Shown one piece after another: positions 9,192 to 64,000 of a stretch of DNA of 64,000 bases. Source of the stretch: Basidiobolus meristosporus CBS 931.73. Its lineage: Eukaryota > Fungi > Basidiobolomycota. The DNA lies in assembly GCA_002104905.1 (NCBI GenBank), contig MCFE01000014.1, positions 124,001 through 188,000 on the forward strand, written 5' to 3'. The notes beneath the pieces were generated by a model. It saw only the letters and a program-made list of their open reading frames with translations, was not told where the DNA came from and did not search any database. Made by a program: the position numbers and the translations under genes. Positions within the stretch are counted from its first letter, which is position 1. Every line of letters starts with the position of its first letter.

Positions 9192-12100
9192 TTGAAAAAC
9201 AGTACGGATGAGAAGCCATACAAGACACAAAAGAGAAGAAGGCATCAAAAGACAGAGTCTCTTGCAGGAGGCCAACAGGACTCAGTCAATCTAAGCCCTC
9301 TGGTCAGGACAGTCAAAGTGCGGAAGAAGAAGTGTCAACATGATGCTTCTAGAGAGGAGGCAAAGGAACCTGTAGTAGTGGTTCCGTCAAAAGGAAAGAA
9401 CGCGGAATTTGGTGAAGAAGTACGGAATGAGCCTTGGGAAGAAGTGTTAAAATGGACAAAGAACGCTAGCACGTCTTCCCATGGCCTATTCCCCATAATG
9501 AAGGTACTGGAGCAAACCAAGGCAACCCTCCCAATAACCAATTTACTGGGACTTGCCCTGGCTCTAGTCAAGGAACTGATAGAGGGATTGAAGGAGATAA
9601 CAACCCTTCATGTCAACCAGACGGTCCTGCAAAAGCCGAATAAAGGTACATACGTAAAGGTACATATAGAAAATAAGGAGATTCTTGCCCTTATCAACAC
9701 AGGATCCTCTACGTTGATCATGTCACAGTCATTAGCAAAACATCTAAAATTAGACATAGTCCCCAACAACACCATCCCAGTATGGCTAGCAAATGACCAA
9801 CTAGACACAATGGTAGGTGTGGTGCCTAATTGCCCCATCCGGCTAGGCAACTTGATAATACACCAAGATGTTGTGGTTCTACCTGTTGCTGCCAACAACT
9901 TACTCATTGGCAAGAGTTGGTTTATCCAACATAAGATGGATATACTTTACAGTGCATCTGAACTCAGGTGGGATACTGAGAGTATCCCACTGATTCATAT
10001 CACCAAGGAGAGTGAGGCGTGTAGCAACAGTGTGACAATCATAGAAGTAAAACCGTTGCAGTCTCCAATCATCACACAAAAGGTGATAAAAATACCACCC
10101 GCCAGTGAGACGGTGATCTCATTAGAGACACCAATAGCTTATTTGATGAGCGGAAGAATGATAACCGCAGCAAAGGCATCCAAGCAACTGGAAGGAATCT
10201 TGATCCGTAAAGTATGGATACCACTGAAATTTGAAATGCAAAGTCTTAAGTGCTTAGTGGTCAACAACGGGCGACACATGATGACATTGCCTAGAGGAGT
10301 ACCATTGTTAAACCTAGAGGAAGTTGACGGAAACAACCAAGGACTACCTACAAACAAGGAACCAGAAGAACTCCCCAAACTAGATGTGGACCCCGGTCTA
10401 CCGCCTGCATTACAAGACAAGTTCCTAGAAGGAATATGCCTGTTTGCCTGAGTATTCTCTAAGAACCAAATAATTGGTCATATACCTGGGGTATATCACC
10501 AAATCCACCTCACTGACAAATACCCCATCAAGCAAAAAGCCTATAGGAACTTGAAAATTGACACAGACTATATCAAAGAGACAATTGAAACTTTATTGAA
10601 AGACAACATCATTACAGAGAGCCAGTCTCCGTGGGCCTCCCCCATAGAGATAGTCCCAACAAAAGACGGAAAGCAACGCTTTTGCATTGACTACCAAAAA
10701 TTGAACACTGTCACCCAGAAGGATGTGTATCCACTACCGTGAATAGATGACCTGTTGGACAGATTAATCAGAGCTAAATATTTTAGCTCTCTTGACTTAA
10801 TCTCCGGGTATTGGCAAGTAGAAGTAGCCGTGGAAGATTGACCCAAAACCGCTTTTATAACATTGTTTGGATTATACAAATGGAACCGACTACCCTTTGG
10901 CTTGTGCAATGCCCCCGCTACGTTCCAAAGGATGATTGACAAGGTGCTAGGAAATCTATGATGGGAATGCGCTCTTGTGTATCTGGACAACATCACAGTA
11001 TATTCCCCCAATGTAGAAGCACATATACACAACGTGCAACATATCCTAACAGCCCTCCTCAAGAACCAACTCAAACTACATCCAAAGAAGTGCCATTTCC
11101 TGTATACAAAATTGTTGTTCCTGGGCCACAAGATCTTGGCAGATGGAATATACCCATCTACTTCACTCCTGAAAGCCATTCAAGATACACCCGCACCAAA
11201 GGATATTAATGCAGTGTTGGGATTCCTAGGATTAGCTGGCTACTATTGCCGCTTTGTCAAAAACTTTGCAATGATAGCAGCCCCTCTATACAAATTGACG
11301 CAAAAAGGCCAGTGTTTTGTATGGTTGGAGCCTCAAAAGAGAGCATTTGATCAGCTGAAACTTTGCCTGACGTCACCGCCAGTGTTACGTTTTCCCAATT
11401 GGGATGCAAGATTTTTTATTAACTGTGATGGAAGTCTTGCCGGTATAGGCGCTGTACTGGGACAATACCACCAACCCGGCAAATTCCACCCAATTGGTTA
11501 CATGAGCTGTTTGTTAAACAAACACAAACATCACTACCCCGTTACCAAGATAGAATGTCTGGCTGTTGTTTATTCAATTAAACAATTCCACACATACATA
11601 CATGGTTGCCAATTCACAATAGTAACAGACCACAGCACACTGGTCTGGCTGATGAAAACTAAAGACTTTACCAGTCAAGTAGCACATTGGGCCCTCCAAC
11701 TACAAGAATACAACTTCAAAGTAATTCATTGCGCTGGCAAGAAACACCAGGACGCAGACTTCCTCAGTTGCTATCCTGTTTGCCAAGTACGCGTCAGCAA
11801 TGACTACAAAGATGTAATCTGCTTTAAAAGAGGAGGGAAGTATCCCAAACACGTTGTTACAAACAAGCAGAAGAGAGACTTTTGAAAGAAATGGTGCCAG
11901 TACAAAGTACAAGAAAACCAATTATGGTTCCTCCAAGGACAGTTCAGAGTTGAGGTACCCCCAATAACTGCCTGCAAAGAAATCATACAAGAAAGACATA
12001 TGTCATTAGGACATGCTAACCCTCTAATGACATACAAGATGTTAAGAAAGACGTTTTATTGGAAAAAAATGATGACCAATGTTGTGAATACACTATGAAG

Positions 12101-18308: not shown

Positions 18309-21300
18309 TGTTGTAAGAGTCTTGGAGATATTGGAAGTGATTTGGAGAACAAGTAGATTATGTGGTTTTCACTTAATGATTTATTGAATGTAAAAGTAGT
18401 ATTTATACTTTTACATGGTCTTGGCATTACAAACACGTAGAATAGGTTAAGGAAGGTCCCAAGAACATGTGTGCAAAGTTTGGGGCTGTTTGGACAACTT
18501 TGAGAATTTTCATGTTCTGGGTACCTGGTATTTTGGTGAAAATATTCTAAGTAAATCCCGACAAGGAATTTGGTCAGTATTCTCTAGGATTTGAAGGTGA
18601 TGATCTAAGTGACTAAGTTAGGTGAATATTTAGGTGGAAAATACGAATTTTTACAACACTCCCACTCAGCTAAATGTTCATACTGACTAGTCCTAATTTT
18701 GACCTAAGATATTCAAACTTGTCTCTAGCTAATGGTTTGGTAAATATGTCTGCAATCATTTCATCTGTAGGACAGTAAACTAAGCTAACTAAGTTATTCT
18801 CTATAGCTTCACGTATGAAATGATGTCTAATATCTATGTGCTTGGTTCTAGCATGAAAAGTTGGATTTCTACCTAATTGTATACATCCTTGATTATCTTG
18901 AAATAAAGTAATAGGCGTTTTTTGACATAGGCCTAAATCTGTAAAGAGCTTTCTTAACCACATTGCTTCTTTTGTAGCTTCACAGGCTGCCATATACTCT
19001 GCCTCTGTAGTAGAAAGTGCTACGGTTGGTTGCTTTCTTGAGTTCCATGAAATGGCTCCTTTACAGTAAAGAAAGGTATATCCTGTGGTGGATCTTCTGT
19101 CTTCTAAATTTCGTCCCCAATCAGCATCAGAGTATCCCACAAGATCCTGTTCTGAATCCTTATAAGTGTATCTTAAGCAGATATCAGCAGTTCCTTTTAG
19201 GTATCTAAAAATCCGCTTAACTGCTGCAATATGATCAGATCCATAATTCTGATTATGTTGGCTGACAACTCCCACTGAATATGAGATATCTGGACGTGTT
19301 CCAAGCATGATATACATCAGACTGCCGACCATAGATTGATAAGGAAAGTCAGGGCTTTCAGATGGCACCAAGCTCTCTTGATTTGGTTGAGTTTTGACCA
19401 AGTTAAGGTTTGTCTCCATTGGGGTAGCTGCCGGTTTGCAGTCTTCCATTTGTACTTCTTTAGTATATCTTGAATATACTTGGATTGGCTTAGGGTAATA
19501 GTCTGGGTACTTCTGTCTATGGAGAACTTAATCCCTAAGTAGTAACTAAGTTCTCCTAGATCGGACATCTTGAACTCCTTAGATAGGCTGGATTTAGTCT
19601 CTTCCAATGTTTCTAGGTTATTGGCGGCTATAATAAGATCATCCACATATAGAGCTAATAGAACTGGATTTGCTCTATCTGGCTTATAGTATATACTATA
19701 GTCAGCATTACTCCTTTTGAAACTCAAAGATTCCAAATAAGAATCTATCTTGCAATTCCAGGCTCTTGGTGATTGTTTGAGACCATATAGTGACTTTTTA
19801 AGCTTGCAGACCAAATGGGGGTTATCTTGGTCAACAAACCCATCAGGCTGGTCCATATACACGTCCTCATCAAGTTCTCCATTCAAAAATGCAGTTTTTA
19901 CATCCATTTGATGAATAAAAAACTTATATTTGGCTGCAATAGCCAATATTAATCTGATGGAATTAAACTTGGCTACCGGTGCAAAGGTCTCAGTATAGTC
20001 AAGTCCTTTTGTTTGAGAGTATCCTTTGGCTACAAGTCTTGCTTTGTATCTTTCAATTGTACCATCAGCCTTGTATTTTGTCTTGAAGACCCATCTGCAT
20101 CCAATTGATTTTTGGTTGATTGGTAATTTGACTAAGTCCCAAGTTTGATTTTCCATCAGTGCCTGATATTCCTCAGTCATTGCAGATCTCCAAAACTTCG
20201 TCTGAGGACTATTTAGGGCCTCTTTTACAGTCTGGGGTTCATCAACATGGACTGAATAGGCATAGGCTAAGTTTGTACCCTCATTGATATAGTAATTTGG
20301 GCTATTTCTTGTCCGATTGGATCTCCGGGCATTTGATACTGGAATGATCACTTCTGGGATATTCCTGGGCACTGATTCTGGCTGAACCACGGTTGTAGAG
20401 TCCTCTGGAGTGAAAAAATTTTCATTGTTTTGCTCTGATTCAATCCTGACAATTGGTGGACTTGAGATCAAATTTTCGTCATCATCTGATGTCATTTTTT
20501 GTGAAAATTTTGAATTTTCATCAAACAACACATCCCTGGACTTGATCAGCTTCTTTGCTTCGGTATTGTAGAGTCTGTATGCCTTACTCTCATTGCAGTA
20601 GCCCAAAAATATGCATTTTACACTTTTTGGCTCAAATTTTGACTGATTTCCGGCCAGTTTTTTGGCATATGCTGTACACCCAAATATTCTTAGATGTTCT
20701 GCACTTGGTCTGTATCCATACCATGCTTCAAATGGAGTAGAATCACGAAGTATTCTGTTATAACTCCTATTTTTAAGATATACAGCAGTGGCAACTGATT
20801 CTGCCCAAAAATCATAGGATAATTTTTGATCATGGATCATAGATCTTGCCATATCAATTATTGATCTGTTAGCTCGTTCTGCTACTCCATTTTGCTGTGG
20901 GGAGTATGGTACAGTAGTCTCTTGCTTTATCCCATGAATTTTGCAGAAGTGGATGAAGAGTTTTGAGGTATATTCTCCACCATTGTCAGAGCGTATTTTC
21001 TTGATTTTTTCACCAGTTTCTCTCTCCACCATGGCTTTGAACTCCCTGAGCTTAGACAGAGCTTCTTCCTTTCTCTCCATGAAGTAGACCCATGTGTATC
21101 TTGTATAATCATCAATAAAAGTGATTAAATACTTCATCCCGCCTAAGGATAAATTTTGCATAGGTCCACACAGATCTGAGTGAATTAGATCTAATTTTTT
21201 CTTAGTTTTGATTAACCCAGAGCTCTTGAACGGTTGTCTGGCTTGTTTCCCATATATGCAGGCTTCACAGTGCTCCAAAATAGCTGGGGGATCAATTTTC

Positions 21301-22994
21301 ACTCCAGAAATTAGCTGATCTTTGATCATTTTACGCAAATAATCAAAATTGATGTGTCCAAATCTCCTGTGCCAAAGCATTGGTGTTTCTTCATTTAAGT
21401 TACTTATATTGGCTTCCAGATATGATGGAATATAAGTCAACTTGTATAGGTTCTGATCTCTGATGCCCGAAGCAATATGGGCACCATTTTGATCAGTGAT
21501 CCTGCATCCAGAATTGTCAAAACTGAAACTGAGTCCTTCTGCTGTGGCCTTGCTTACAGAGAGTAGGTTCTTGGCTATTTCTGGTACATAGAGTACTTCT
21601 TTAAAGGTCAGTGTATGGCTTCCTTCACTGCTTCTAAGGTTTACTTGGATAGTTCCTTCTCCCACTGCATCAAGTGTTCTATCGTCACCCATGAAAACCT
21701 TCTTAATTGGAATTTCTTGATATTGGGTAAAAAGTTCTTTTTGGTGTGTAAAGTGTTGAGAAGCTCCAGAGTCAATATACCACGTCTGAGAATCCTTGTT
21801 TGTGGTCATATTTAGTGCAGATATGAATAGTCTATCTTCAGTTGTTACAGCATTTCCATATTCAGGCTTCTTTTGCTGATAATCTCTCTTTTTGAAACAT
21901 CGGTCTGATGTGTGTCCTTTCCTTTTGCAGTAGTTGCAAAATAGGTTGCTGTTGCCTTTGTAGGGTCTTGGGTACCTCCTTTGTTGGTTATCATTGCTTA
22001 TTAAAGCATTTTCTTCTTCCTTCTTATTGGCGCTTGATTTTCTTAATTCTTCATCCAGGAGCCTTCCATATACGTAATTTAAGGTCAAATCTTCAGTTCT
22101 GGACTCTAGGGCTGATACAAGGCCCTGAAACTCGTCTGTCAGGCTATTCAGGATGGTAACTATCACATCCTCATCAGTAGTTGGTATGCCCACAGATTCC
22201 ATCTCATCTACCAGCAGGGTAATTCTGTTAATTAGATTTTTCATTTCTTCTCCTGGCAGCATCTTTGTAGTAAAGAATTTTCTTCTCAGATACATTTTCT
22301 TGGCAGCTGAACATGACTGGTAGGTGTCTTCTAATGCTTTCCAGGCATTCTTTGCCGTTTTTGCTCTTGAGCATTGAATTAGCAATTTGTCCTTGACATT
22401 AAGGCAAATGCAGTTAAAGGCACTTTGTTCTTTCTTCTGGTACTTCAAGGCTTCCTCTCCCACGTTTTTAGGAGGGCATTCTTCTCCCATGACAATATCC
22501 CAAAGGCCTCTTTCTTGTAGCAGCATCTTCATCTTCACCTTCCACACTTGGTAGTTAGATCCATCCAACTTTTCAGCAGAGGGAAAAATTCCAGTAATAG
22601 CAGTAGTAGACATTGCAGAGAGTGACAGCTCGGGGCTCATAACCTGTTGTAAGAGTCTTGGAGATATTGGAAGTGATTTGGAGAACAAGTAGATTATGTG
22701 GTTTTCACTTAATGATTTATTGAATGTAAAAGTAGTATTTATACTTTTACATGGTCTTGGCATTACAAACACGTAGAATAGGTTAAGGAAGGTCCCAAGA
22801 ACATGTGTGCAAAGTTTGGGGCTGTTTGGACAACTTTGAGAATTTTCATGTTCTGGGTACCTGGTATTTTGGTGAAAATATTCTAAGTAAATCCCGACAA
22901 GGAATTTGGTCAGTATTCTCTAGGATTTGAAGGTGATGATCTAAGTGACTAAGTTAGGTGAATATTTAGGTGGAAAATACGAATTTTTACAACA
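18309..22994 (-). mobile_element. Full-length Ty1/Copia retrotransposon copy 2, very recent
   Basis: 350-bp LTRs 18309-18658 and 22645-22994, apparently identical by eye. TSD ATTAG (18304-18308, 22995-22999). PPT 18659-18666. PBS 22633-22644. Confidence 0.97.
18670..22640 (-). CDS. Copia gag-pol polyprotein with a single 1-nt frameshift near 19451
   Basis: gag, CCHC, protease WYIDSGAS, integrase, RT (YVDD) and RNase H are all intact. TTCCATTTGTAC versus TTCCATTTGGTAC in copy 1. Confidence 0.92.
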
Positions 22995-43159: not shown

Positions 43160-46100
43160 CTATTCAGGACGTCTCTTGTCGAGGAGGGTTTGTACTAGAG
43201 GCACGAGTGTTTGTTCGGAGTGCTCGATATTCTCCAGTATTTGGAGGAGCTTCTCACCGAGCGAATTGACCAAGGGGACCAACACAACCCGTACAGTGGG
43301 GAATGGATCTGCGTTAAGGGAGCGTAACTTCAGCAATCTATCCCGATTTTGAATGAAGGTTTCCACGAACTGATGAAGAACCTTCAGGATCGTATTGACC
43401 GCAAGCGGTTCTTGAATGGAGGTAACGTGGGTGGGTAACGTGCGAGAAAGCTTCCACAAGCATTTCTGTACAAGATCGAAAAATTTAAAGGAATCCAAAT
43501 GCTGGTAAGGTGCCCAAGCGACCGGGTCAGCCTCTTTAGCCATCTGATGGGTGGCAAGCGTGTACATATCGAACAGAACCTCGAACAGATGCTCAGGATG
43601 GGCGTTTTCCAAGAGTTTCATGATCACCACGTTGAGCGAGCGTTCCAGCGGCTGTGGGTTCAAGGGGTCGGAGCTTTTGGGAAGTGTATCCACAACAAGC
43701 AATATCAGCACGTAATCGAATAGTTTACGAAGGGTTGCTGGGCTGATTACCCGGACCAGTTCTTTGCGAGCAAGAATACGTGCATTGATGGTCATGATGT
43801 TCTTTGAGCGTTTGAGCCATCCGGGATTCTGCATTGCTTCAGGCTCGACCTTGAGCTTACTTAGTAAGGCTGAAATCAATGTGTTGACCACAGGAAGCAG
43901 CGCCATTTTGTCGTCACTAAGGCAGTGCGAGACCTGTTTGATGGCGATGGCGAGGCGGTCATCTTCATCGCTGCACATTACGGCATCTACAAGCCCTTGA
44001 ACATCAACCTTGGCAGGCTGAGGGATTCCTGCGTCTTGTGAGTGGTCAGCATTGTCCGGCTTGTTGGATATGGTGAGTGACGTGAACGCTTTAGACAGTA
44101 GCTCTGGAGAGTTCTTTCCGCTAGGATTGGAGCTGAACGATTCTGGGGAATCAACCCGATCAGACGATACTGAGGAGGCGGTTGAGCTACTGGAGTAAAT
44201 ACTCGGTGCTTGATGTGGCTTTGGAAGGGTATTGGTGGTGGTAACCGACTTTACAGACGACAGAGATTCATTGGAGGTGCGGTTGGCAAACCTACTGAGA
44301 GGTAGAGTTCGTGCAAGCATGGGGTGTCGTTGCATTGGCCCTTGTCCATTGGCTCCGGTGGCATCGTAGGAAGGTGGCTTGCTGCGCTTTAAGCGCTCTT
44401 CGAGCATGGTTTGCTCTTTGTTGGAGAGTTGGCCAGTGTATTTTAAAACCGACTCGCCGACGATGTTTTGCGTCTCCACAATAGTGTTCAATGCAGCATT
44501 GCGCACCAGCGAATCCTTATCACTGATAAATGATGCGATCACGGGTAGGTTCTTGGCTGGATTGCAGACGGACAAGCCATTTCGGCGGATCAGAACGCCA
44601 ATCTCTTCCAAGCAATCGGCCCTCGTCCTGGAGCTCTTTGACTTCAGTCCATGATCGACTATTAGAGTGAAAATCTTACTGGCCGGATAGATTCGGCAAA
44701 ACTTCTTGAGAATCTCCCGAGAACGAGCACGGAGAACATCGTTGTTGTAGCCCAGCTTTCCGATGAATATTGGAAGGAAGGCCGACGCCTCGTAATCTGT
44801 GAAGCAGTAAGTCTGCTGATCCATTAGTGCAATGAAGTGTTCTAGAAAATCCGTGCATTTAAGCAAGATGCTAGTGTTTGTGTCGAATAGCCTCAATGAC
44901 ACGTATTTCAATAGAATATCCGAATTGTTGATAAACCGGGAATCCATCTCCTCCTTGCTCATTTGGTATTTTGCTCCCGAGAACTCTTTGTTCACAATGC
45001 ACTCATCAAGAAGGTTTAATGCGTCGAGTATCCCCTTACTAGCATTGATGCCTGTGGAGAACATCAGTTGATGAATTCCAGGGCTGAGATGCGGCTTCAT
45101 TTGTTCCGAGAGCATGTCGATGTGTTCTTGACGCGGCGTCTCAAACACCCATTTACTTGGCCCTTTGTCTTTGTCTCCACGCAGAGATTTGGCTCTAGGA
45201 TCGTTAGTAGTAAGAGGGGTTTCCTGATCAAAAGCGATGGGAAGGCTTTTCTTCGTTTCAACACGTCTAGGTGTCCCCTTACTGCTGGGTGCGGAAGTTA
45301 TGGGCGAATCCTTTGGTGTGGCTCCTAGACGAGCTGCTTGTGGCCTGGTAATGGATTCGCTAGAGTTTACTCTAGAAACACTCGCTCTTTCCGAAATAGG
45401 GGGACGGACACTAAGCTCCCGCTTTCTTTCCACAGGTGCCTGGCTAGATATAGCGGCACTGGAAGTTGGCCGTGGCTTGGCAGTCGGGGCGGTATTCGTG
45501 CGCAAGCTTGAATTTGTTTGTTTGCTCATCTCGTTCGAACCACCTTTGTTGAGGCTTTCGATGATAGGTAGAATGGTTTGACGTGAAGCACCAGGGAGAT
45601 CGGAGACTTTGTCTTTGACAAGAGTGTATCCACCATTTCGGATCACATACTCTATAAGAGTGGTTGCGCTCTTACGGATCTCCGAATTCCTGTCCTGTAG
45701 ACATTGAAGTGTAGGCCGCACCAGGGAGCTAAGCTCTAACTGATTGGATTCGGAATCCTTCTCGAAACAAGTTTCCAGCTTTTCGTTGAGCCAGCAAGTG
45801 AGGTCCTTCCGTAACGTAGGCGAATCCTGTACCAAGCTGTTGGCGATCACCGGAATCAAGAGGTTGAGGTTACAAACTTCGGACACTGAATCCAGTGTCT
45901 TTAAGGCGCTTTGACGAGTTTGGACTTTGCTATCAGCCAGACACATCAATATTTGAGACAACACTATGCGCGACTGCTTTTCAAACGGCTTGCCCATGGC
46001 CACAGCTATCGTACCACATATATCAAGCGCAAGGGACTGGATGATCTTGTTACTATCCAAGATTCGATCTTTCATGGTGTTTAACAAGTCTCCCACTTGT

Positions 46101-49100
46101 GGCTTGATTCTCTTGTTGGCAGCCTCTAAGATGCCTTGAACTTGATCTAGAGATTCCTTGCGGACTTTCCAGTTGGAGTCTCTCATGTCTTTCAGGATTT
46201 TACTGCTTATTTGAGAGCTGATATCAACGCGAGGAATAGCATCGTCAAGCACATCTTGCATCGATACCTCCTTGCCTCCATTACCGCCGGATGGCTTAAC
46301 CCCCTTGGTTGGCTCTGGTGGCTTCTGATCAGCCACTTTAGCAAACTCAGCGTCAACAGTACTCAACAAACTTGGGCTAAGGTCTTGCACTAGTGATCGG
46401 ATCTGTGGGCCAATATACGTGCTTAAGAGACCAAGAAGAGTAACTGAGTTGGTTCTTACAGCAGCATTCGAGCTTCCCAGCATGACCTTCAGGAATTCAA
46501 TAAGCTCACGGACGTTCAACGATGCAACCCCAAAATCCTGGATTGTAGCATTGATCCATCCAAGGCATTCAGAATGAACTTTGGGAGATTTGGCCTTCTT
46601 CCACGACTCGTACGCTTGATGCAAGACAAATTGCAGCGAAAACTGCTCCGCGATACTTGTCAAACAATCTCCTGAAGGCTTTCTCAGCTTGATGTCACCC
46701 AGTTTCTCGGCTAGTCCAGGGACGACAAGTGCCCCACATCCTCTACTGAAAGTAGAAGACTTTTCGCACAGCACCTGTATAACCCCGTACATTTTCGAAG
46801 ATACCTGGAAGTTCGTCTCCTTCCAGCCAGGTTTCTTAGCTAAAGCCCGAATGACCAATTCAGACTCAATGGCACTGTTATTTGGATTTTCCAAGAAAGT
46901 GGTAAGAGTCTCCATCGAAGCAAGTCGGTTTTTCCAATTGGAATCAGAAAATCCAGCGTACACTTCTGAAGGGATAATCTCCATAGCCTTCTCTTCGAAA
47001 TCCTCGCTAGTATACTTAAATCGGATCGGCTCCTCGGCCTTGGGAGCGGCAGATGGTTTTGCAGGGGCGGCAGCAGGCTTCCGAGCTGGAAGGGCCGAGG
47101 TGGTCTTTGGCTTAACAACACTCTTGGAAGGAACGCGCTTAACTGGAGGTTTGCTGACTGGCTTCGGCTTCATAACAGGCTCAGAAGAAGTTACAGCACG
47201 AGATGGCTCTTTCATCAATCTTTTGGCAGCCGGTGGCTTGGAAGGAGCTTGTCCTCCACTAGAGTTGCTCTTGGGAGGAATGGCGGAAGGCAGGGGCTTC
47301 TTTGCTTTAACCTCCGCTTTTTCATAGAACTCGCGAATCTTGCCTTCCTTAATTTTGTCTACCTTCTCCAAGTAAGTTATCATAGCTCTTTCGCCGACAA
47401 CCTTCATCATGGTTCCTAAAAGCTCTGCCGCCGCCTCGCGGACACTCGTATCACTGTCATCCAAGCACTTTAGCGCCGAATCGACGATCCAGTTGACGTC
47501 GGATTTACTCGGCAGATACTTCGTCTCCTTGACACAACGAGTCAACCATTTGTTGGTCTCGGCCTTAATTTGAGGATTTTTGTGCGCAAGCGCAGTTATC
47601 GACTCCTCCATGATATCGCTAAAAGAAATCTATACTTGGGTTAGTCCATGGTTGTGCAAGTGATGATGATTCAAAGCTTATACACTACCACAATGAAGAC
47701 TGAGTCCAGACAATTACGCAAGGCCTCGACAAAGTTCGCCTTCTTCTCCTTAAGCTTTTCCAGAAGTGGATTCAACACCTAAACAATTCACTATGGGTGT
47801 TACTTATCTCGTAGCACTGAGGTGTAATGGTTTGGGCAACTTACCAACTCACTGTATTGAGAGAATTCTTGTCTAAGCCCAATTGCCAGTGCTTCGATGC
47901 ATTGTGTTGCCAGTGTTCCTACCATGATGTTGACATCGCCAATACGCTTTTTGAAAATTTGTTAACCAATAATACGCATAATGGTTTAGTATCAGCAGGC
48001 AGCTTACTTTCGCCAAAGCACTGACGAGTTCTCGATAGTCGCCAGGAGAAATCTTGGGGACACGAACAACCAAGATAAATGACTCCAATGCTTCCTTCCT
48101 ATCTTTCCACTTTGAAGATTCGAGGTTGGTGTAGAAGTCACTAGGTATCTTGGAGAGAACATCGATAGGATCTGCCAAAGAGAAGGCATCGATTTCGGGC
48201 TCTTCGACATCCATTGGTTGGTCTCCCTCTCCATTCTGGCCATCTAGAGATATTAGCGGTTAGTGCAAGTGTTTGTGACGCTATACAAAGATCAGGCGAA
48301 CCTAATATATCCAGGTTTCCTTTTTGCTCTGAACGAAGAAGCCTCGCGGGGGTAGGTTTCTCTTTTGGCAACTGTTCAAACGCCTCATTCAATTCTTTAA
48401 TCTAATGATACCAGATAATGAGAGTTAAGTGGGATATCCGGCTGATACCAATATGAACACCATACCTGTACAGGTTTGAGCTCGGCTAAGCAGGGATGAA
48501 GTGCGTCACCAAGCCATTTGTATAACTCGACTGCCAATTGAGTGCCCTAAATAAGATAACATCGAGTTAGCAGACTGCTATTCTCCGAGTAATTGTCCTC
48601 ATTTGCATACCTCAGCTCTAACATTCTTGTCTGTATGAGCAAATGCCTTTGGCAGCGCTTTAAGAATAGGTTTGGGGTTTACGCTTTTGCAACCAAACGA
48701 TCTAGTTGCAAGGAAATATGGTGAGTGATCTTTGCTCTAAACCGAGATGGCCATGTTTGCTTACCTGACGATCTCCTTAAGTGCTAGGATCGCTGTAGCG
48801 ACCAGCTTCGGAAGTTTGTGATTAAGTGCATTCACGAGTTGTTCCTGAACATTCGTCCGAACGAAAAAGTTAGTTGGAAGCTCTTATTAGTGATCTAACT
48901 CTAATGAAAAAGATAATTACATTGACGGTTTCGCCCGAGCCAATTTCAACCAGCAGTAACAAAATATCTACGGCCTTGCTCTTGGTTCCCGCACGAGAGC
49001 TACTGAGGCCCTTTTCTATAACTGCGGATATAATGTCGTCATGACTGCTATTTCGATAAGAATTGTAGTTTAGTGCGAAGAAATTAGTGGAAAGGTAAGA

Positions 49101-55237: not shown

Positions 55238-56240
55238 TCACGAATCCCGATTGATTTTCCTGTAAACTAAGGCAGCCAATACTGTGGTAAAGAGAATGAT
55301 AAGAATATCGAATGTTGCGGTAGAGAGCGTCCTACGTCTATGATGCACGGGAGGCTGTGGGTTGCCAGCACTGCTGGGCCTCGGCTGCGCTGCTACTGCT
55401 GCTGCGGAGGCAGGCAGAGTAGTAGTGGGAGTGTTGGCTACGGTGGCATTCACGTCTTCTTTGTGAGCAGTCATGGGCGGTTGTCTACCGGCAGACACCC
55501 CTTCAGAGTTTGAAAGTGGAGAGGTGCTGTTGTCTTGGGATTTTGCGGCTTGAGCTTGCTTTATCTGATCAGCAGATTGCACAGAGAAGTTCAGCTTTGC
55601 CAACTCCTCTTTAGCTTTTCTATCGTTATTGCTTTGGCTTGTAGAGCCACTTTCATTTTTGTCTTTTTCTTGCAATACTTCTTTCATCTTGCAGCCGCAG
55701 ATCTCACACTCCCAATTTGCAGATTTTTTGGCGATTATTCTTCTGTCTTCGTCGGAACAATCCAAAGCACCAATGGCCCCTTCACCGTGGGTAGGCATGA
55801 AGCTTATTAACGCCAATAGTGCTAATCTGATGCCCCAGACCGGTTGCCAGAATTCAGGGTGATATCCAGTTATGCTTAGGCAAATTTTCTTGTTTACTTC
55901 AAAACGGCCATTGGGGGTGAGGAGCATAATATTTGGTGGCTTGAAGGGGTATTCGAAAGGCAAGAGGAGTCGCCCGTGATATCTCCCTCCTTCGAAAGGT
56001 GTACCAGCAGGGCCGCGTAAAGTAAAATGCCAGTCAAATATGTTTGAATCTAATGGGGCAGCTGTAAATTCGGCGGAAGGGTCTTTTTCAAGTTCAGCCA
56101 GCTCACGCATTATGCGCTTTACCGCTACAAAATAAAAGGTGGAGATAAAAAACTGGCTACTTGTGTGAAACTCCACCAGATGGTCGCTTACCTGGACTTT
56201 TTCTGCTGTAATGAGAAGCAATTTGGGAGGGATCTGACAT
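55238..56240 (-). CDS. UBC6: ER tail-anchored ubiquitin-conjugating enzyme Ubc6/UBE2J (one intron)
   Basis: AVKRIMREL, PNGRFEVNKKICLSITGYHPE and a C-terminal TM helix. ATG at 56240. Confidence 0.93.
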
Positions 56241-58371
56241 GATGCTCAGTTGTTACTTCCAAGTAGCAAAAGTCAAACAAGAGCGGAAAAGTTGAAAAGT
56301 CACACTGAACATTTACCGAGATTAAATAATTAGCCTTGTATTAAGCAATGAATAATGCGAGCTCCATCACGCTCAGGTGACCACCTCATGTAGTAAGGAG
56401 TTGTTAAATATCAGTGGCTATTATCCATTGGTTACATGAGGGTTTCATTTGGAACATCCTTGCCAAATATATGCATTTCGCTTGCAACCATTGTATTTCA
56501 AAAATTCAGGGAAATTAGTTGCTTAGAATAACATTCCTTGGTTATATTGAAGTATGATGTGAACTTCTATGCTTACTGGTACAATTACTGATGTGATTCT
56601 TTTCATAGAAGTTCCATTCACATGCCATATTCGCAACACATGCGCACCAAATAAACGAGATGGGTTGATTAGGCTGCCTTGCATCCTGTCAGCAAACTCA
56701 ATTCTCGTTCCGATCATGGATTGAATTTGAATGCTATTAGTTACTATCAAGCATCTCTATCCTATCTGCATCCATATTAAGAATTCAAGAAGTGTATCAG
56801 TACGAACCTGGTATTCTTTTAAGCCTTCATATAAGATAATGCTTAATATACTGTTAATACGCCTAGCGCCAAAGTCAAAGCGTTTTGCTCATAGTGAAAA
56901 ATCACCAAGGACATACTATGCTTTGGTGCTTAATCTGGAATGTTTTCTTATTTGAGTTCTTAGAAGGGCCAAGTGTTGTTACTTGATAGTATATTGAGTA
57001 GCATATATACACTAAGTAGGGCTATGTATGCAATATCCATCATAAGCATAGGTAGAAATGCTGCTTGGTTGATAAAGTCTGTTTGGCACCCAGACAATTC
57101 ATAAAAATCTTGCTTGATTTTTTTATGGTATCCATACCTTTTCAATATGGTCTTGTAACGGTATTTCACCCCATGCGCAACCAAAAATTTCGTATTTCTC
57201 ACAACTTCTCGGAAAGCTAGTAGCGGGACTTCTTACTGTGCTAATGAATGGTGTATATAATAGCCGATACACGGTATTGTGCTTAAGTTTGGTCCTTAAT
57301 CCTCATTCTTGAAAAGTTCAAAGTTCAATGCAAGTTCGCATCTTGATGATGTCAATCAAAATTTTCTGATAGAGATGACTAGGCATGGATATTGAGTGCC
57401 ACAACCATTAGCTTAGAGATTTCAATGGTATGAGCATTCACTTGGCTAACTGCTGGCAGTGGAAACTTAGGTGATTTGGAGTATGTAGAAGAAAGTATGG
57501 TTTTTCAATTATCAATGCATTGAACTAAAATAAAGAACTTATACTTCTGAGAGCTCTGTCAATATCATGATAGGAATAACTGGAAGAAGACCCCAGGAAG
57601 TTTGGCGTCTTTTAAAATATCGATATCTTCCAGTAGTTTCACTATTTCCAGGAGTTGGTAAATGCCATACTTTACTGATTATCAAATGAATGCCATTTAC
57701 TTGGGATTGACCAAGTACCACATCTTAGATATACAAATGGTGAGTGTTGACCTAATAATTTGCAAGAATATAGACTAACTCCTAAAAACTATTGAAATTT
57801 CCATTTAATCCAAATGACTTGAGACGTAGAAGCCAAGCTGACAAAGTAATTACACTACAGAATTAATTTGCCAGGAGTTTATCAAAACTGACTTATGAAT
57901 AAGCATTCTTCATATCTTTATGCTATACGCTGTTTTTAGGCGAAAAGCGGGCTGCTACAGGTATTTATTCTGCCTATACACCGAGGGTGATATTGGTGAC
58001 CTCCTCAATCGTTTGAAAGGTTTCTCGGACTCTCAAAATATCATCAACTAGCAGTGACCTATTGATATCTCTGGGTGGTCCTCATAACTCAAATAGTCAA
58101 CCTTTTGAGAATGCTGATCATATAACAGGGGCAAGGAGTGAACTGATGGAATCCCAGAGACATCTACCTAGAGGTCGGCCTCTTCAGATGGACTCAAGTA
58201 TGGAGTCGACGTCCAGTGGAACAACTAACAGGTGTACATTAGCTCTAATACTGCAGATTATGGGTAGCTTTTTTAATCTCCTAGCAAGGAATTCGAAGAA
58301 CATATCAAGATAAACCACCAAATTTAAGTGTCTTTCTACATCAAGTAGTAAGATATTTATTGCCTAGACCG

Positions 58372-58914
58372 CTAACGCGTAAACAAGTTGAATACATCGC
58401 AAATCTCTTGAAGTCTCTTTGGACCATCTGGCAGGATTGGGAATTTCTTACGGAACTCCTTCGCTGGCGGACATTCTAGACATGTACTATATATCGCTGT
58501 CACTTTCGGATTACAAAGACATTTCTGAATCCTAGATGCCTCAAATTTTATCGGCGCCTTAAAAATATGAACGCAGTTGGGAAGAATTGTCTTCATGCAT
58601 TGCACACATTGCGGAGAGGTGAATACTCGTGTAAGTGTGTTTGGCGGAAGGTCTGATACTCTTGGACCAAGACTGCCTGCTACTGTTGCGAGTCCTCTTC
58701 CTACCCCAAGGCCAACGGTTCCAAGCGTCCGTCCAAGACCTCGCCCAACCCCGCCGCCAACGGTCCTGAAAGTCTGTCCAATACCAAGGCCGATATTGTT
58801 CCCCAATTTCGTGAAAGAACGATTGAGACCATCAAAGATGCCGGGGCTGGGCTCAGGATAGGCGTGGCAGAATCCAACAAGCAAGAATAGAAATGCGTAT
58901 CTTAGTAACAACAT
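58372..58914 (-). CDS. Small secreted cationic protein A (180 aa): Gly-rich repeats + 8-Cys domain
   Basis: Signal peptide MLLLRYAFLFLLVGFCHA, intronless, paralogous to 59359-59853. Confidence 0.82.
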   Translation of the reverse strand: MLLLRYAFLFLLVGFCHAYPEPSPGIFDGLNRSFTKLGNNIGLGIGQTFRTVGGGVGRGLGRTLGTVGLGVGRGLATVAGSLGPRVSDLPPNTLTRVFTSPQCVQCMKTILPNCVHIFKAPIKFEASRIQKCLCNPKVTAIYSTCLECPPAKEFRKKFPILPDGPKRLQEICDVFNLFTR

Positions 58915-59358
58915 GCCCTTTGAAGATTCTATCCCAGCAAAATGTGGATTCTGAACTTGATCTAGAGCGAAGTAGCGGCATATAACTGATAGAGGAGTGT
59001 CACAATCATGCTGTATCTATCACATTGTATTGAATAAGTTTCAGTAATGCGCATGTACAATACCTGCAGAATGGATCGGTGGACGGTAAGCCACGGATAT
59101 GGATGGCGGATTTGTGGATGTATCAGACGGATGAGCTGATGACAAGCTGACATTTAATACGCTTACAAAACCAATGAACGGCTTACAGTATCTCTCGCTG
59201 GTTGATGCGCAACCAGTTACAATCTCGTTTAAAAAGTAGCTTTAAGGCTAGAGTCTTCCACACACTGGCTTTTTGTACGACAATTAGCTGCAACACATTA
59301 TGTAGAACGCATGGATTTCATGATTTATTGTCTGTAGATACCGGCATACAAATCCACT

Positions 59359-59853
59359 TCAAACAATTGTTCCTAATACATCACATATGTTTTTGACCAC
59401 CAGAGTACTGCGAGGTGTATACTCTGACTTCATCAGAACATCTCTGACGTATTTGCATTTAAAGCATGAATCCAGTCTAGAGTATACTGATGGGTTGCAG
59501 AAACTCCGATGGACTTTCTTTAAAGCCTTGAGATCTGGAGGGTTCTTCTTCATGTCGATACCCTTGAAAGTTTGGGACATGGTGCGAAACTGTGAGGTAA
59601 ATAACGCAACACACGGTCCACAGGATGGTAGAGCACCAATCGCTTTAAACGTAAAGCCAACTCCTTTTGTGACACCAGTGAGAGTTCGTCCGAGTCCTCT
59701 GCCAAGCCCCTGGATAGATCGTCCAAGGCCCCGGCTTGCACTTTGTAAAGAGTGCCCCAAATCGGTAAAAACATTCGGGTCTGGCCCGGGATTTGGGGAA
59801 GCAAAACAACAACTGATGAATAGAAGCGTAATGGCCTGTCTAAGCAGCATCAT
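59359..59853 (-). CDS. Small secreted cationic protein B (164 aa): Gly-rich repeats + 6-Cys domain
   Basis: Signal peptide MMLLRQAITLLFISCCFA from ATG 59853. Shares GRGLGRTL, CNP, CxxC and ICDV with protein A. Confidence 0.82.
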   Translation of the reverse strand: MMLLRQAITLLFISCCFASPNPGPDPNVFTDLGHSLQSASRGLGRSIQGLGRGLGRTLTGVTKGVGFTFKAIGALPSCGPCVALFTSQFRTMSQTFKGIDMKKNPPDLKALKKVHRSFCNPSVYSRLDSCFKCKYVRDVLMKSEYTPRSTLVVKNICDVLGTIV

Positions 59854-60985
59854 GATCCCGTACTCAGCGATTAAGGTCCAACAATGGTATTTATCAGAGC
59901 CTGGAAAGTGACACAGCCACAGTGAGTTGACTCCAGCAACCGGAGACATTTAAAAACGTGTCCAGCCATGAAATTAACTGCTCTATCAATATCATAGGTA
60001 ATTGACTAGGGCAGCTTCAAACATAACTTCAGGCACCGTTTTACTATGACCCAGGCCAATAGAACCTGGATCAGATGAAACGCGCATAGAGCATCGCCCC
60101 TCCATCTGAAGGACATCGATTGTATCAAATCGTAGCTAGCAGATATGAGGCATCGGATCATGGTCCATATAATTTTCCATTGGTACATGAGTTATAGCGC
60201 AGTGAACGCACAACAAAATACTCAGCTGAACAAGGAGTCACTGGCGACAGTGTTATGTTGCATTGTGTGGACAGCCAACGATACTGGTATTATGCGCCAA
60301 ACCTATTCTCTCTCCTGATCGGTAAACCCAGATTTAGTCACGCGCTAGATTAGAGATCCATCAGGTTTGAAATTAGCTTCAAATATGTAGGTATTTGAGT
60401 TAGCACAATTGGTCAGAAACATTTACTTCCCACTATACACTCTCTTACCTGCGCACATGAATCAACTTTTACTTTTAGGTATTTAGGATCTATTCTTGCT
60501 AGCAAAGACTCCAATACATGTAATATCTACAGATATCACCATATAACACTATCACAGGACTTATTGAAAGTTCATTGCAAGCTTAAGAGAGTAGTGATAA
60601 ATGTCATCTAATGAAACATGTACAGTGGAGAGTACGTATGCTGGCTTTGATAGCCTTTGATTGAACATCATAAACATAGTCTTGTCATGACTGTAAGTAC
60701 TTCCCATATTACCCCTGAATGTTATCAGGGAATCTGATCCCCTTACCACTCGTACCCTTTTTAGGGTGAACAAAAACCAGTAAATAGTGTTTGGTCACAC
60801 ACAGAGAATAATGATTACATTATGTGTAGCGATTAGTGTGGATAGTGCCCTACTGAGAATATCCCAGCAAAATTTCGGTAAATACAGTGCAGTTTGGAGT
60901 TGATTTCGTAGTAACTATTCAAATACAATTCACTAATCTCCTTGCAGAGTAAAATCTTGTAAGTTTTATATTTATACCCAATTAT

Positions 60986-61315
60986 TGTTGTAAAAATTCG
61001 TAATTCCACCCAAGTATTCACCTAACTTAGTCACTCGGATCATTACCTAAAAATCCTAGAGAATTCTGACCAAATTCCCTATCGGGATTTACTTGGAATA
61101 TTACCCAGAACATAAAATATCTCAAAGTTGTCCAAACAACCCCAAACTTTACACACATGTTCTTGGGGCCTTCCTAAACATATTCTACGTGTTTTTTTGC
61201 CAAGGCCTTGTAAAAATAAAAATACCGCTTATTCATTCAATAAATCATCAAGTGAAAACCAAATAATCTACTTGTTCTCCCAATCACTTCCAATATCTCC
61301 AAAACTCTTATAACA
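60986..61315 (+). mobile_element. Copia solo LTR (diverged)
   Basis: TGTTGTA...TATAACA, same family as the LTRs at 1-25 kb. Imperfect TSD ATTAT/GTTAT. Confidence 0.85.
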
Positions 61316-61334
61316 GTTATTACATTGACTTGTC

Positions 61335-61625
61335 ACCTAGATAATAGCCTTGAGCCTTAATAGCTCCTGCCCAAGTTCCTTGTTGGGACTAAGAATATTT
61401 GCACCAAAACGTTGGTACCCAGAACATGAGAGTTCTCAAAGTTGCCCAAAAGCCACCAAACTATCAACACATGTTCCTAAGATCTTCCTCAGTACTTGGG
61501 ACCTTCCTAAACACATTATACGCACTTTTCTGCCTAGACTATATCAAAGTATAAATACCACCTTTACATTCAGCATGTCATTAAGTGAAAACCAGGTAAG
61601 CCACCTCTACACCCAGTCACTTTGG
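61335..61625 (+). repeat. Degenerate Copia LTR relic
   Basis: LTR motifs GGTACCCAGAACATG, AAAGTATAAATAC and TCATTAAGTGAAAACC. Ends uncertain. Confidence 0.65.
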
Positions 61626-63209
61626 AAAAGAACACCAGCAAAAAATCAGATGAATTCCAAGTTTGAGATTCTTTATAGGGTATAATTACAATAGCAGGCT
61701 ATATAAACTGGGTTTTTTCACTACTGAATGAATTAGCCAACCCCCACCCAGCCAATCACAAGCATTAGTGCTACTAGTGACTCCAATCAGCAACGTGATG
61801 GGAAATAATGGAGGGAGGCTTACGAATACCTCCGTATAAATACCCACAATACTACTCGCACCTCTTGACCACGATATACCAATTGTGCCCAATGTTTACG
61901 CATCATGAATACTGAGCTTCTGTGTTTGGGCAGCTCAGCAAGAAAATAGCCTTGGCTGCCATGGCTCACCACGCAAGAGATTCATGATTGATCTAATAAC
62001 TTGCCTATCTTGCTAGCTGGAGATGATGAATCTATGGAGTATGTATGCGCCCAAGCCAATTATTTTAATTTGGTGGATCTGAATTTTGAGTTGCTGGAGA
62101 TTCTGGCCAGTGCTGAGGATATACGTTGCTGACTTGAAAGCAACACTAGGCCTCCAGTGATCATACTCACTAGGGCTCCTGTTGAACGCGAACCCACTGG
62201 AACATTTTTGTGCAGGGTGTTAGGAGGGAGATTGTAAATGTGTTTAAACCAACTATTTTTGAGAATTTTTATTATGGCTTCTGAGTTGCAATTGGTCCCT
62301 GCCAGTATTGTGGCCGGCACCTTCACCGGCACCTTGAATGGTTGTTGGGCTTTACCTGACGAGGAATTGACATGCTGGGTAATTGAATGGAACACAGGAG
62401 TAATGCACACTTCCTATACTTCACGAGCTCATATTTTGTCTGAAATTGCCAGCTATGAGAGGGCTTAAGTTGTTAGTACAAGGCCAAAGCTGGTAGTAGA
62501 GGTCATATTGGTAGCGGAGTCTGAATATGTAAGGGAACCAGAAAAGAGGGGTTCCTGGGTGTAAAGAGGCCAAATATTTTCTCGCAATACGGTGAGTTGG
62601 CACTCTAACCTGTAATGCACATATTTCATACTAGACACCAAACACCCTCTATTGAGCCATCCAAAATCATGCATAACCACACAATATCTCCGTAATGTAT
62701 GGCATTGATTAATAAGGCTGTAGGGAAGTAGTAGCAGAAACGGTTGATACCTTCGTAGAATAATTCTTGGTATATTAACCATAGCCAATACATGACTAAC
62801 AACCCGAAATCCACGCCATCGGAATGATCCCTGAGAACAATTGCCGTACAACAATAAAGCGAGGAATGTTTCGCTGCCAGAGATCGAGGTAGGTGTGTCT
62901 AGTCGTACCTATTTACTACGGCAGCTGCTTCAAAGCATCACCGGCTCAATGCAACCATTATGGCTTATACTACCTACGAAACTCTGAAAACAGCAGGCTA
63001 TGTACACGTCTATGACCATTGATAGACGTATGTATGTATCCCACGAGTTGTAATAGAAAAAGCTGAGAGGTTGTTTTTATTTTCACCAAGTTAGCTATGG
63101 AAGATCATCTCTGCTGGAATACGTATCTTGGTAGCATCTTGATTCACAGTTATCACACAAAAGACGCTCGAGTAAACAGCAAGCTTGCTACTGAAAAATC
63201 GGAGACAAC

Positions 63210-64000
63210 TCACTCGTCCTTGAAATTCTTCTCGACAGCAATCTCCCCACATTTCACGATAGTGATAGTGTCTGTGGGCCTGTTGGCTAGTGATTCGCTT
63301 AGTAACCACCAATAACATCAGAAGGCACACTGGAACTAACCTGAGACTGGAGTGTTTTCAATTTCGCGAACGACACTCATCCCTTGTAAGACTTCTCCAA
63401 ACACTACATAAAGTTTTAAGATGATTGGGTTTGAACACGCTGGAACAACACTCCAGCTCGATGAGAGGTACTTACCTACATGTTGGCCATCAAGCCAATG
63501 TGTTGGCTCAGCGGTAATGAAAAACTGTAGATAAGGATTAGGTTAAGTTCCAAAGGCTTATACGTGCATAGAAAAAGAACTCATTACTTGGGATCCGTTT
63601 GTGTCTGGTCCAGCGTTAGCCATACTCAGTAACCCTTTTACATTTGAAAAACAAGGTGGTTGGCCACAATGCGAATTGCTAGACGAACTTGGGCATGTTT
63701 ACCAGCTTTTGAATGTTCCAACTCAAAGCTCTCATCCTTGAAAGACTTCCCGTAAATAGATTTTCCACCTGTTCCATCGCCGTTAGTGAAATCACCACCC
63801 TGGATCATGAAGCCCTTGATAACTCTGTGGAATTTGCTGTCTTTATATCCATAGCCGTTCTCCCCTGTTGCTAACGTCACAAAATTCTTTACGGTCTTTG
63901 GAACCACGTTTCCATACAACCCAAACACTATTCTGCCTAGTTTTGTGTCCCCTTTGGTCACATCAAAATAAACTTTGTTGGTTACTCTAGGATCTGCCTG
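63210..64000 (-). CDS. CPR5: Cyclophilin B-like peptidyl-prolyl isomerase, 5' end outside window, multi-exon
   Basis: [59 protein letters not shown]. Apparent end NFKDE*. Confidence 0.85.

Follow-up and report, generated by a model that had tools for sequence, protein, structure and literature searches.

Two adjacent genes of Basidiobolus meristosporus CBS 931.73, a fungus of frog and lizard guts, belong to what similarity searches indicate is a small gene family with no members known to date outside Basidiobolus; we call them A and B. Both lie in a 64,000-nucleotide (nt) stretch of contig MCFE01000014.1 (assembly GCA_002104905.1, positions 124,001 to 188,000), which we refer to as the window and by whose numbering positions are given unless another record is named. 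Each gene encodes, in order, a signal-like peptide, a run of X-Pro dipeptides, a Gly/Arg-rich amphipathic region, and a basic Cys domain, and we consider it highly probable that this is a real family of secreted proteins. The family is undescribed (it comprises one "hypothetical protein" record and two unannotated genes, and there is no Pfam family for it), and its type is familiar: that of small, secreted, Cys-containing, lineage-specific fungal proteins, here with a cationic amphipathic module. The interpretation that we favor, a genus-restricted, defense-type secreted protein with a membrane-active mechanism, is offered tentatively, as the leading candidate rather than as a probable account; on present evidence, the family is an orphan one whose design is suggestive.

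Family members and their distribution

Gene A (58372..58914) and gene B (59359..59853) are single-exon open reading frames (ORFs) on the minus strand, of 180 and 164 codons plus a stop, respectively, delimited from the ORF list and by reading of the sequence. A 444-bp spacer separates them, and the pair occupies MCFE01000014.1:182372-183853. An earlier interpretation of this DNA, made from its letters alone (hereafter, the sequence-only reading), had described two adjacent, co-oriented, intronless paralogs, and its account is accurate to the base: A and B are paralogs by BLASTP (27% identity; E = 1e-16). It had also called the products cationic. Upon removal of the signal-like peptide, the mature forms (162 amino acids [aa] with 8 Cys in A, 146 aa with 6 Cys in B) have isoelectric points of 9.7 and 9.9, respectively, and net charges of about +12.

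A profile built from A and B was run with HMMER against 1.84 billion cluster representatives, as the sequence-only reading had proposed for establishing family distribution. The sole relative at E ≤ 0.001 was a 198-aa protein of Basidiobolus ranarum (KAK9764266.1, hypothetical protein K7432_008365; E = 6.1e-25), encoded by a single-exon gene on a 13.8-kb contig. Its layout comprises an 18-residue signal-like peptide ending S-F-A, the dipeptides HP-NP-DP, four 12-residue repeats, and an 8-Cys domain ending VCDLIE. A word-index search with A alone recovered no relative, and one with a three-sequence profile recovered the B. ranarum protein only; a scan of JGI metagenome contigs gave 353 pattern matches, none of which was confirmed. 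No description of the family was found in the literature; the papers recovered on Basidiobolus and antimicrobial peptides concern host peptides only.

Invariant in all three members are Ala18, Pro20, Pro22, Pro24, Phe27, and the core G-R-G-L-G-R-T-L-G, as well as P-x-C-x-x-C, C-x-P-x-V, a second C-x-x-C, and C-D close to the C terminus. Between A and B, the codons differ at 34 of the 42 aligned residues that are identical. In all pairs among the three genes, synonymous divergence (dS) is saturated and nonsynonymous divergence (dN) amounts to 0.6 to 0.75; because of the saturation, no dN/dS ratio is obtainable. The similarity of A and B is maintained at the level of the protein.

The adjacency of A and B, co-oriented and 444 bp apart, would be expected of an obligate two-component pore former that needs both proteins, which is one of the systems that the sequence-only reading had envisaged, and their divergence to 27% identity could allow for split roles. 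However, the B. ranarum protein is the only family member among the annotated proteins of that species, its contig, which extends 9.5 kb upstream and 3.6 kb downstream of the gene, holds no paralog, and both B. meristosporus paralogs retain the full architecture, with neither being specialized. We regard an obligate pair as very improbable, and this part of the earlier proposal is not supported. The B. ranarum contig and the window have only copia retroelement fragments in common; the comparison points to neither a conserved gene pair nor visible synteny, and A and B look like a plain tandem duplication.

Signal-like peptide and X-Pro run

In assigning signal peptides and cleavage sites, we relied on the n/h/c layout and on the −3,−1 rule rather than on SignalP. 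Residues 1 to 18 of A (58861..58914, minus strand) comprise a basic n-region, a 10-residue hydrophobic core, and small residues at −3 and −1, ending C-H-A. The equivalent stretch of B (residues 1 to 18; 59800..59853, minus strand), which ends C-F-A, aligns residue by residue with those of A and the B. ranarum protein, such that the 18-residue secretion-type N terminus read earlier from the two window genes is found, in alignment, in all three members.

Directly after Ala18, at the predicted signal cleavage site, each protein carries several X-Pro dipeptides in a row: YP-EP-SP in A (residues 19 to 24; 58843..58860, minus strand), SP-NP-GP-DP in B (residues 19 to 26; 59776..59799, minus strand), and HP-NP-DP in B. 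ranarum. The runs in A and B are as originally described, and the alignment adds that the prolines at positions 20, 22, and 24 are invariant in all three members, whereas the X residues vary. The dipeptides are uninterrupted and in register with the predicted signal-peptidase site, as is expected of a dipeptidyl-aminopeptidase substrate, and the combination of fixed prolines with variable partners reads as the signature of such a substrate. X-Pro pro-pieces follow the signal peptides of promelittin and cecropin, both of which are made as trimmed precursors. In fungi, Yarrowia lipolytica's alkaline extracellular protease loses X-Ala/X-Pro dipeptides after its presequence, according to a passage in PMC10095220 that cites Matoba and Ogrydziak (1989). 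Like this protease and the yeast alpha-factor, A and B have a dipeptide run that starts at the signal-peptidase site (a predicted one in A and B). In the Yarrowia protease and alpha-factor, the runs mix X-Ala with X-Pro or consist of Glu-Ala, and they are followed by a Kex2 site and a long pro-region, whereas the three or four X-Pro pairs of A and B lead straight into the mature protein, and their processing is predicted.

A Gly/Arg-rich region with alpha-helical periodicity

Behind the X-Pro run lies a Gly/Arg-rich region spanning residues 25 to 85 in A (58660..58842, minus strand; 19 Gly and 6 Arg) and residues 27 to 76 in B (59626..59775, minus strand). Both contain the identical octapeptide GRGLGRTL (residues 57 to 64 of A and 51 to 58 of B). 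We computed the hydrophobic-moment spectrum over the whole region and compared it with those of 2,000 composition-preserving shuffles. The moment reaches 0.505 in A (peak at 96 degrees, z = 5.4) and 0.520 in B (peak at 100 degrees, z = 5.2), values that none of the 2,000 shuffles attained in either case; in the B. ranarum protein, it reaches 0.263 (peak at 96 degrees, z = 3.1), with 6 of 2,000 shuffles as high. The region is amphipathic with alpha-helical periodicity, as had been read from the sequence along with the shared octapeptide. The most amphipathic 18-residue stretch of B has a moment of 0.79. On helical wheels of all three proteins, a face of Ile, Leu, Val, and Phe opposes one of Arg, Gln, and Thr, and most glycines occupy both flanks, with a clean separation of these faces.

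By its design, the region would form a long cationic amphipathic helix or an array of helices joined by hinges. In the B. ranarum protein, the repeat portion consists of four tandem 12-residue repeats built on GLGRTL, which suggests short helices interrupted at GG rather than one straight helix. The glycine zipper that had been proposed for the region is borne out only in part: A has three strict [GAS]xxxGxxxG motifs; B and the B. ranarum protein have none and display only the looser GxxxGxxx[GST], found five times in A, three times in B, and once in B. ranarum. Neither A nor B matched any Gly-zipper family of Pfam.

A positively charged, glycine-rich stretch with alpha-helical amphipathic periodicity is also what characterizes peptides of the bombinin, magainin, plasticin, and melittin types, and the sequence periodicity of the cationic amphipathic helix of linear antimicrobial peptides is present in both A and B (z = 5.2 to 5.4). 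No sequence homology to these peptides was detected in profile and Pfam searches. Bombinin- and magainin-type peptides are animal products of about 20 to 35 residues that are cut from precursors; in contrast, the stretch in A and B is 50 to 60 residues long, uses Arg instead of Lys, has no cleavage site behind it, and stays fused to the Cys domain.

The composition of the Gly/Arg region, which resembles that of bombinin- or plasticin-type peptides, could be taken to indicate that A and B are precursors, from which at least one cationic, glycine-rich peptide would be set free while the Cys domain acted as carrier or pro-domain, an arrangement that the sequence-only reading had also put forward. 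X-Pro runs are typical of processed peptide precursors (PMC10095220). Yet in none of the three members is the Gly/Arg region set apart from the Cys domain by a dibasic (Kex2-type) site or another conserved cleavage motif: dibasic pairs are confined to the Cys domain or, in B. ranarum, to the vicinity of the N terminus, and the junction sequences themselves vary among members. As such, the sequences give no sign of release as short free peptides, the arrangement of released peptides plus carrier is not borne out, and we judge a peptide precursor to be improbable.

The C-terminal Cys domain

Toward its C terminus, each protein has a basic domain containing eight Cys in A (residues 95 to 180; 58375..58632, minus strand), where it ends in ICDV plus six residues, and six Cys in B (residues 77 to 164; 59362..59625, minus strand), where ICDV likewise lies near the C terminus; both its basic character and this shared ending had been recognized before. 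The Cys pattern of A is PxCxxC, C, CxC, CxxC, C, with no CC pair. Compared with A and the B. ranarum protein, B is missing both the third and the fourth Cys and carries 10 inserted residues between those two positions; such a joint loss would be expected if the two residues formed a disulfide pair in the other members. Modeled alone from the three sequences with AlphaFold, the domain has five predicted helices (pLDDT of 76.5), whereas the full-length model of A, from a two-sequence alignment, was judged unusable (pLDDT of 50.8).

No named family was recognized by the sequence-only reading, and searches of Pfam, NCBIfam, and PDB sequences agree. Pfam hmmscan of the whole proteins and isolated Cys domains of all three members returned no family at E values up to 10, and a profile of the domain found nothing below an E of 1.5 among all PDB sequences. 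The only NCBIfam row, for B, is glutaredoxin-like (E = 0.063, far below the cutoff in significance) and was most likely drawn by CxxC. With the domain model, Foldseek found nothing in the PDB at E ≤ 1e-3 (its best rows, at E > 1, are cytochrome b562 fusions), and the best result of an exhaustive VIA-align search (Z = 5.1) involves unrelated membrane-protein helices, under the level that the tool calls common for helical models. Searches of the ESM Atlas by features and structure with A and the B. ranarum protein gave no usable match (TM < 0.4). The modeled domain has thus met with generic helical bundles only and is without a clear fold match, which would make it a folded domain without recognizable relatives.

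Comparison with the known Cys patterns of CFEM and saposin-like proteins places the pattern of A closest to CFEM and its first four Cys closest to saposin-like proteins. Like CFEM domains (PF05730), which are fungal and extracellular, the domain of A has about 70 to 80 residues, eight Cys, no CC pair, a central CxC, a PxCxxC-like beginning, and an all-helical structure (predicted in A). Membership in CFEM was rejected: there is no Pfam match even at an E of 10, the Cys spacings fall outside CFEM ranges, and B has only six Cys. Neither Foldseek nor VIA-align listed a CFEM entry, such as the helical basket of Csa2, a missing match being no proof of a different fold. Like the saposin-like proteins NK-lysin, amoebapore, and granulysin, the domain of A is small, basic, all-helical, and disulfide-locked over about 80 residues (as predicted), and it shares with them a CxxC start, which suggests interaction with lipids or membranes. 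Saposin-like membership was likewise rejected, with no SapB_1 or SapB_2 match in Pfam, no saposin-fold row in the structure searches, and a Cys order that differs beyond the fourth Cys. Hydrophobins were dismissed on the lack of a CC pair in all three mature proteins and of a Pfam hydrophobin match.

These searches bear on the possibility that A and B are extracellular structural, surface-coating, or adhesive proteins of the fungus itself, which would place them on hyphal walls, ballistic conidia, or sticky capilliconidia, where their cationic, glycine-rich part would bind anionic wall polymers or substrates. Their high Gly content and strong positive charge suit such a role, as does the lack of a conserved processing site, by which the protein would remain whole. 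However, neither hydrophobin nor CFEM nor any other wall family was matched in Pfam, a match to a structural cell-wall family being what the sequence-only reading had set against its own proposal. The proteins also lack a Ser/Thr-rich stalk, a GPI-type hydrophobic C terminus, and wall-anchoring repeats (their C termini are short and polar), and the repeat region, at 50 to 60 residues, is short and amphipathic rather than fiber-like. We consider a surface role doubtful, though a possibility of some weight.

Gene models

In codon usage, scored with four housekeeping ORFs of the window as the reference, the proposed frames of A and B are the best-scoring of the six. Poly(A)-signal-like AATAAA hexamers follow the stop codons of all three family members; those of A (58356..58361, minus strand) and B (59324..59329, minus strand) lie 10 and 29 nt past the stop codon, respectively. 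TATA-like hexamers situated 71 nt (A) and 40 nt (B) upstream of the start codons are possible promoter elements.

Two alternative ORFs concern gene B. An earlier start codon lies 32 codons upstream, at 59949, and is disfavored because B resembles A and the B. ranarum protein only from the methionine at 59853 onward and because the TATA-like element sits downstream of the earlier ATG. An antisense ORF of 174 codons (59387-59911, plus strand) covers gene B almost fully; since no antisense ORF of comparable length exists opposite A or the B. ranarum gene, we disregard it as probably a by-product of the codon composition of B.

Proposed function and opposing evidence

In the membrane-active interpretation that we favor, the proteins would enter the endoplasmic reticulum co-translationally and lose their signal peptide after Ala18. 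The X-Pro pairs would probably be trimmed stepwise by a Golgi or extracellular dipeptidyl aminopeptidase of the Ste13/DPP-IV type, or else would shield the N terminus. Disulfides would form in the basic five-helix domain, and the protein would be released intact as a two-part cationic molecule, its Gly/Arg stretch tethered to a disulfide-stapled helical domain. On an anionic membrane or surface, this stretch would fold into amphipathic helices having Leu, Val, and Ile on one face, Arg on another, and glycines along the flanks, with each paralog acting alone. The most likely role would be defense or competition against microbes in gut contents, dung, and soil, whose envelopes the proteins would bind and perturb. 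The habitats of Basidiobolus include vertebrate guts, soil, and decaying matter (10.1101/2025.03.31.646025), and we find this role the most economical because the genus lives among dense microbial communities (guts, dung, and soil). The fully specified version, in which the proteins form a class of fungal defense proteins as yet undescribed and peculiar to Basidiobolus, a new disulfide-stapled helical fold permanently anchors an aminopeptidase-trimmed array of Gly/Arg amphipathic helices, and the protein as a whole, rather than a released peptide, permeabilizes the envelopes of competing gut microbes, is unlikely to hold in all of its parts. Should the proteins be produced and act on membranes, an early-diverging fungus of the gut would possess a defense-protein design that no other sequenced organism has.

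Several observations weigh against this interpretation. At 146 to 180 mature residues and with a folded domain, the members are not classical short linear antimicrobial peptides, and a cationic amphipathic design would suit adhesion or wall binding, too. The strict glycine zipper is unconserved across members. The 12-residue repeat core of the B. ranarum protein peaks at 93 degrees, and a single long, straight amphipathic helix is unlikely there, to judge from its repeats. Across the Gly/Arg region, the full-length AlphaFold model of A has a pLDDT of only 33 to 46. The codon-usage margins of the proposed frames are small, at 0.01 (A) and 0.06 (B) bits per codon versus 0.13 to 0.58 for the reference ORFs. 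In addition, the annotation of MCFE01000014.1 has no gene call at A: in the record stretch that we checked, which is identical (100% over 26,271 bases) to window positions 33160-59430, gene A occupies positions 517-1059, ahead of the first gene call, at 3191. By exact look-up and by protein searches, both A and B are absent from a collection of 15 billion proteins.

Both genes are unannotated in public protein sets, which may reflect weak or conditional expression. Together with the weak codon-usage score and the siting of the pair, which has no gene neighbors within a low-GC stretch of 7 kb and adjoins degenerate repeats, this absence from the reference annotation is what would be expected if A and B were ORFs in decay or without expression, left over from a formerly functional gene pair and open by chance. 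We think this improbable: the two ORFs, of 164 and 180 codons, are still open after synonymous sites have become saturated; invariance extends to six Cys, to the prolines, and to the GRGLGRTL core, even though their codons differ; and the start codons, the positions of the stops, and the AATAAA signals are all preserved. That the B. ranarum homolog is annotated while both B. meristosporus genes were missed indicates that the small secreted genes of the genus may be undercounted, and secretome surveys of Basidiobolus (e.g., PMC9391592) may miss such genes.

The target of a secreted protein could also be the host, in which case A and B would be effectors acting on the gut epithelium or immune cells of an amphibian, a reptile, or, in opportunistic infections, a mammal. 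Small, secreted, Cys-containing, and lineage-restricted proteins fit the usual profile of effector candidates, and Basidiobolus is associated with hosts and occasionally pathogenic (PMC9391592). The proteins nevertheless contain no host-targeting motif, showed no similarity to known effectors in Pfam, PDB sequence, and fold searches, and show no expansion (one to two copies observed), and nothing in their sequence points to a host target. A host-directed role thus seems to us a slim prospect, and a membrane-active role against microbes continues to be the interpretation that we prefer.

Genomic surroundings

Beyond A and B, the window holds copia-type retroelements and housekeeping genes (encoding a TOG/XMAP215 protein, TCP-1, importin-beta, and a UBC6-like E2). 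From the UBC6-like gene to a cyclophilin gene fragment (63638-63961), about 7 kb (56222-63600) hold no convincing coding sequence apart from A and B, and across this interval the GC content (0.37 to 0.44) is below that of the housekeeping block to the left. A degenerate direct repeat lies upstream of gene B in two copies of about 75% identity (61102-61289 and 61416-61622, 314 to 333 bp apart). Short ORFs across the repeat (61102-61622) carry a recurring YPEH..SQSCP peptide, and this stretch is gene-poor and low in GC.

The retroelements include a near-complete copia-type polyprotein ORF of 1,151 aa (19317-22772, minus strand) with gag, protease, integrase, and reverse transcriptase (RT) portions, a second, broken copia RT copy (1862-3680, minus strand), and a gag-aspartyl-protease ORF (9192-10451, plus strand). 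Related copia fragments also flank the family member of B. ranarum, at positions 4500-6100 of its contig.

The TOG/XMAP215 ORF (43160-48214, minus strand; 1,483 codons) had no match to its 1,483-aa product in an exact look-up, and its first 600 residues are 100% identical to a B. meristosporus CBS 931.73 protein. There are at least three TOG/XMAP215 paralogs in B. meristosporus (100%, 58%, and 51% identical to the window copy) and at least two in B. ranarum, numbers that fit with extensive gene or genome duplication in Basidiobolus.

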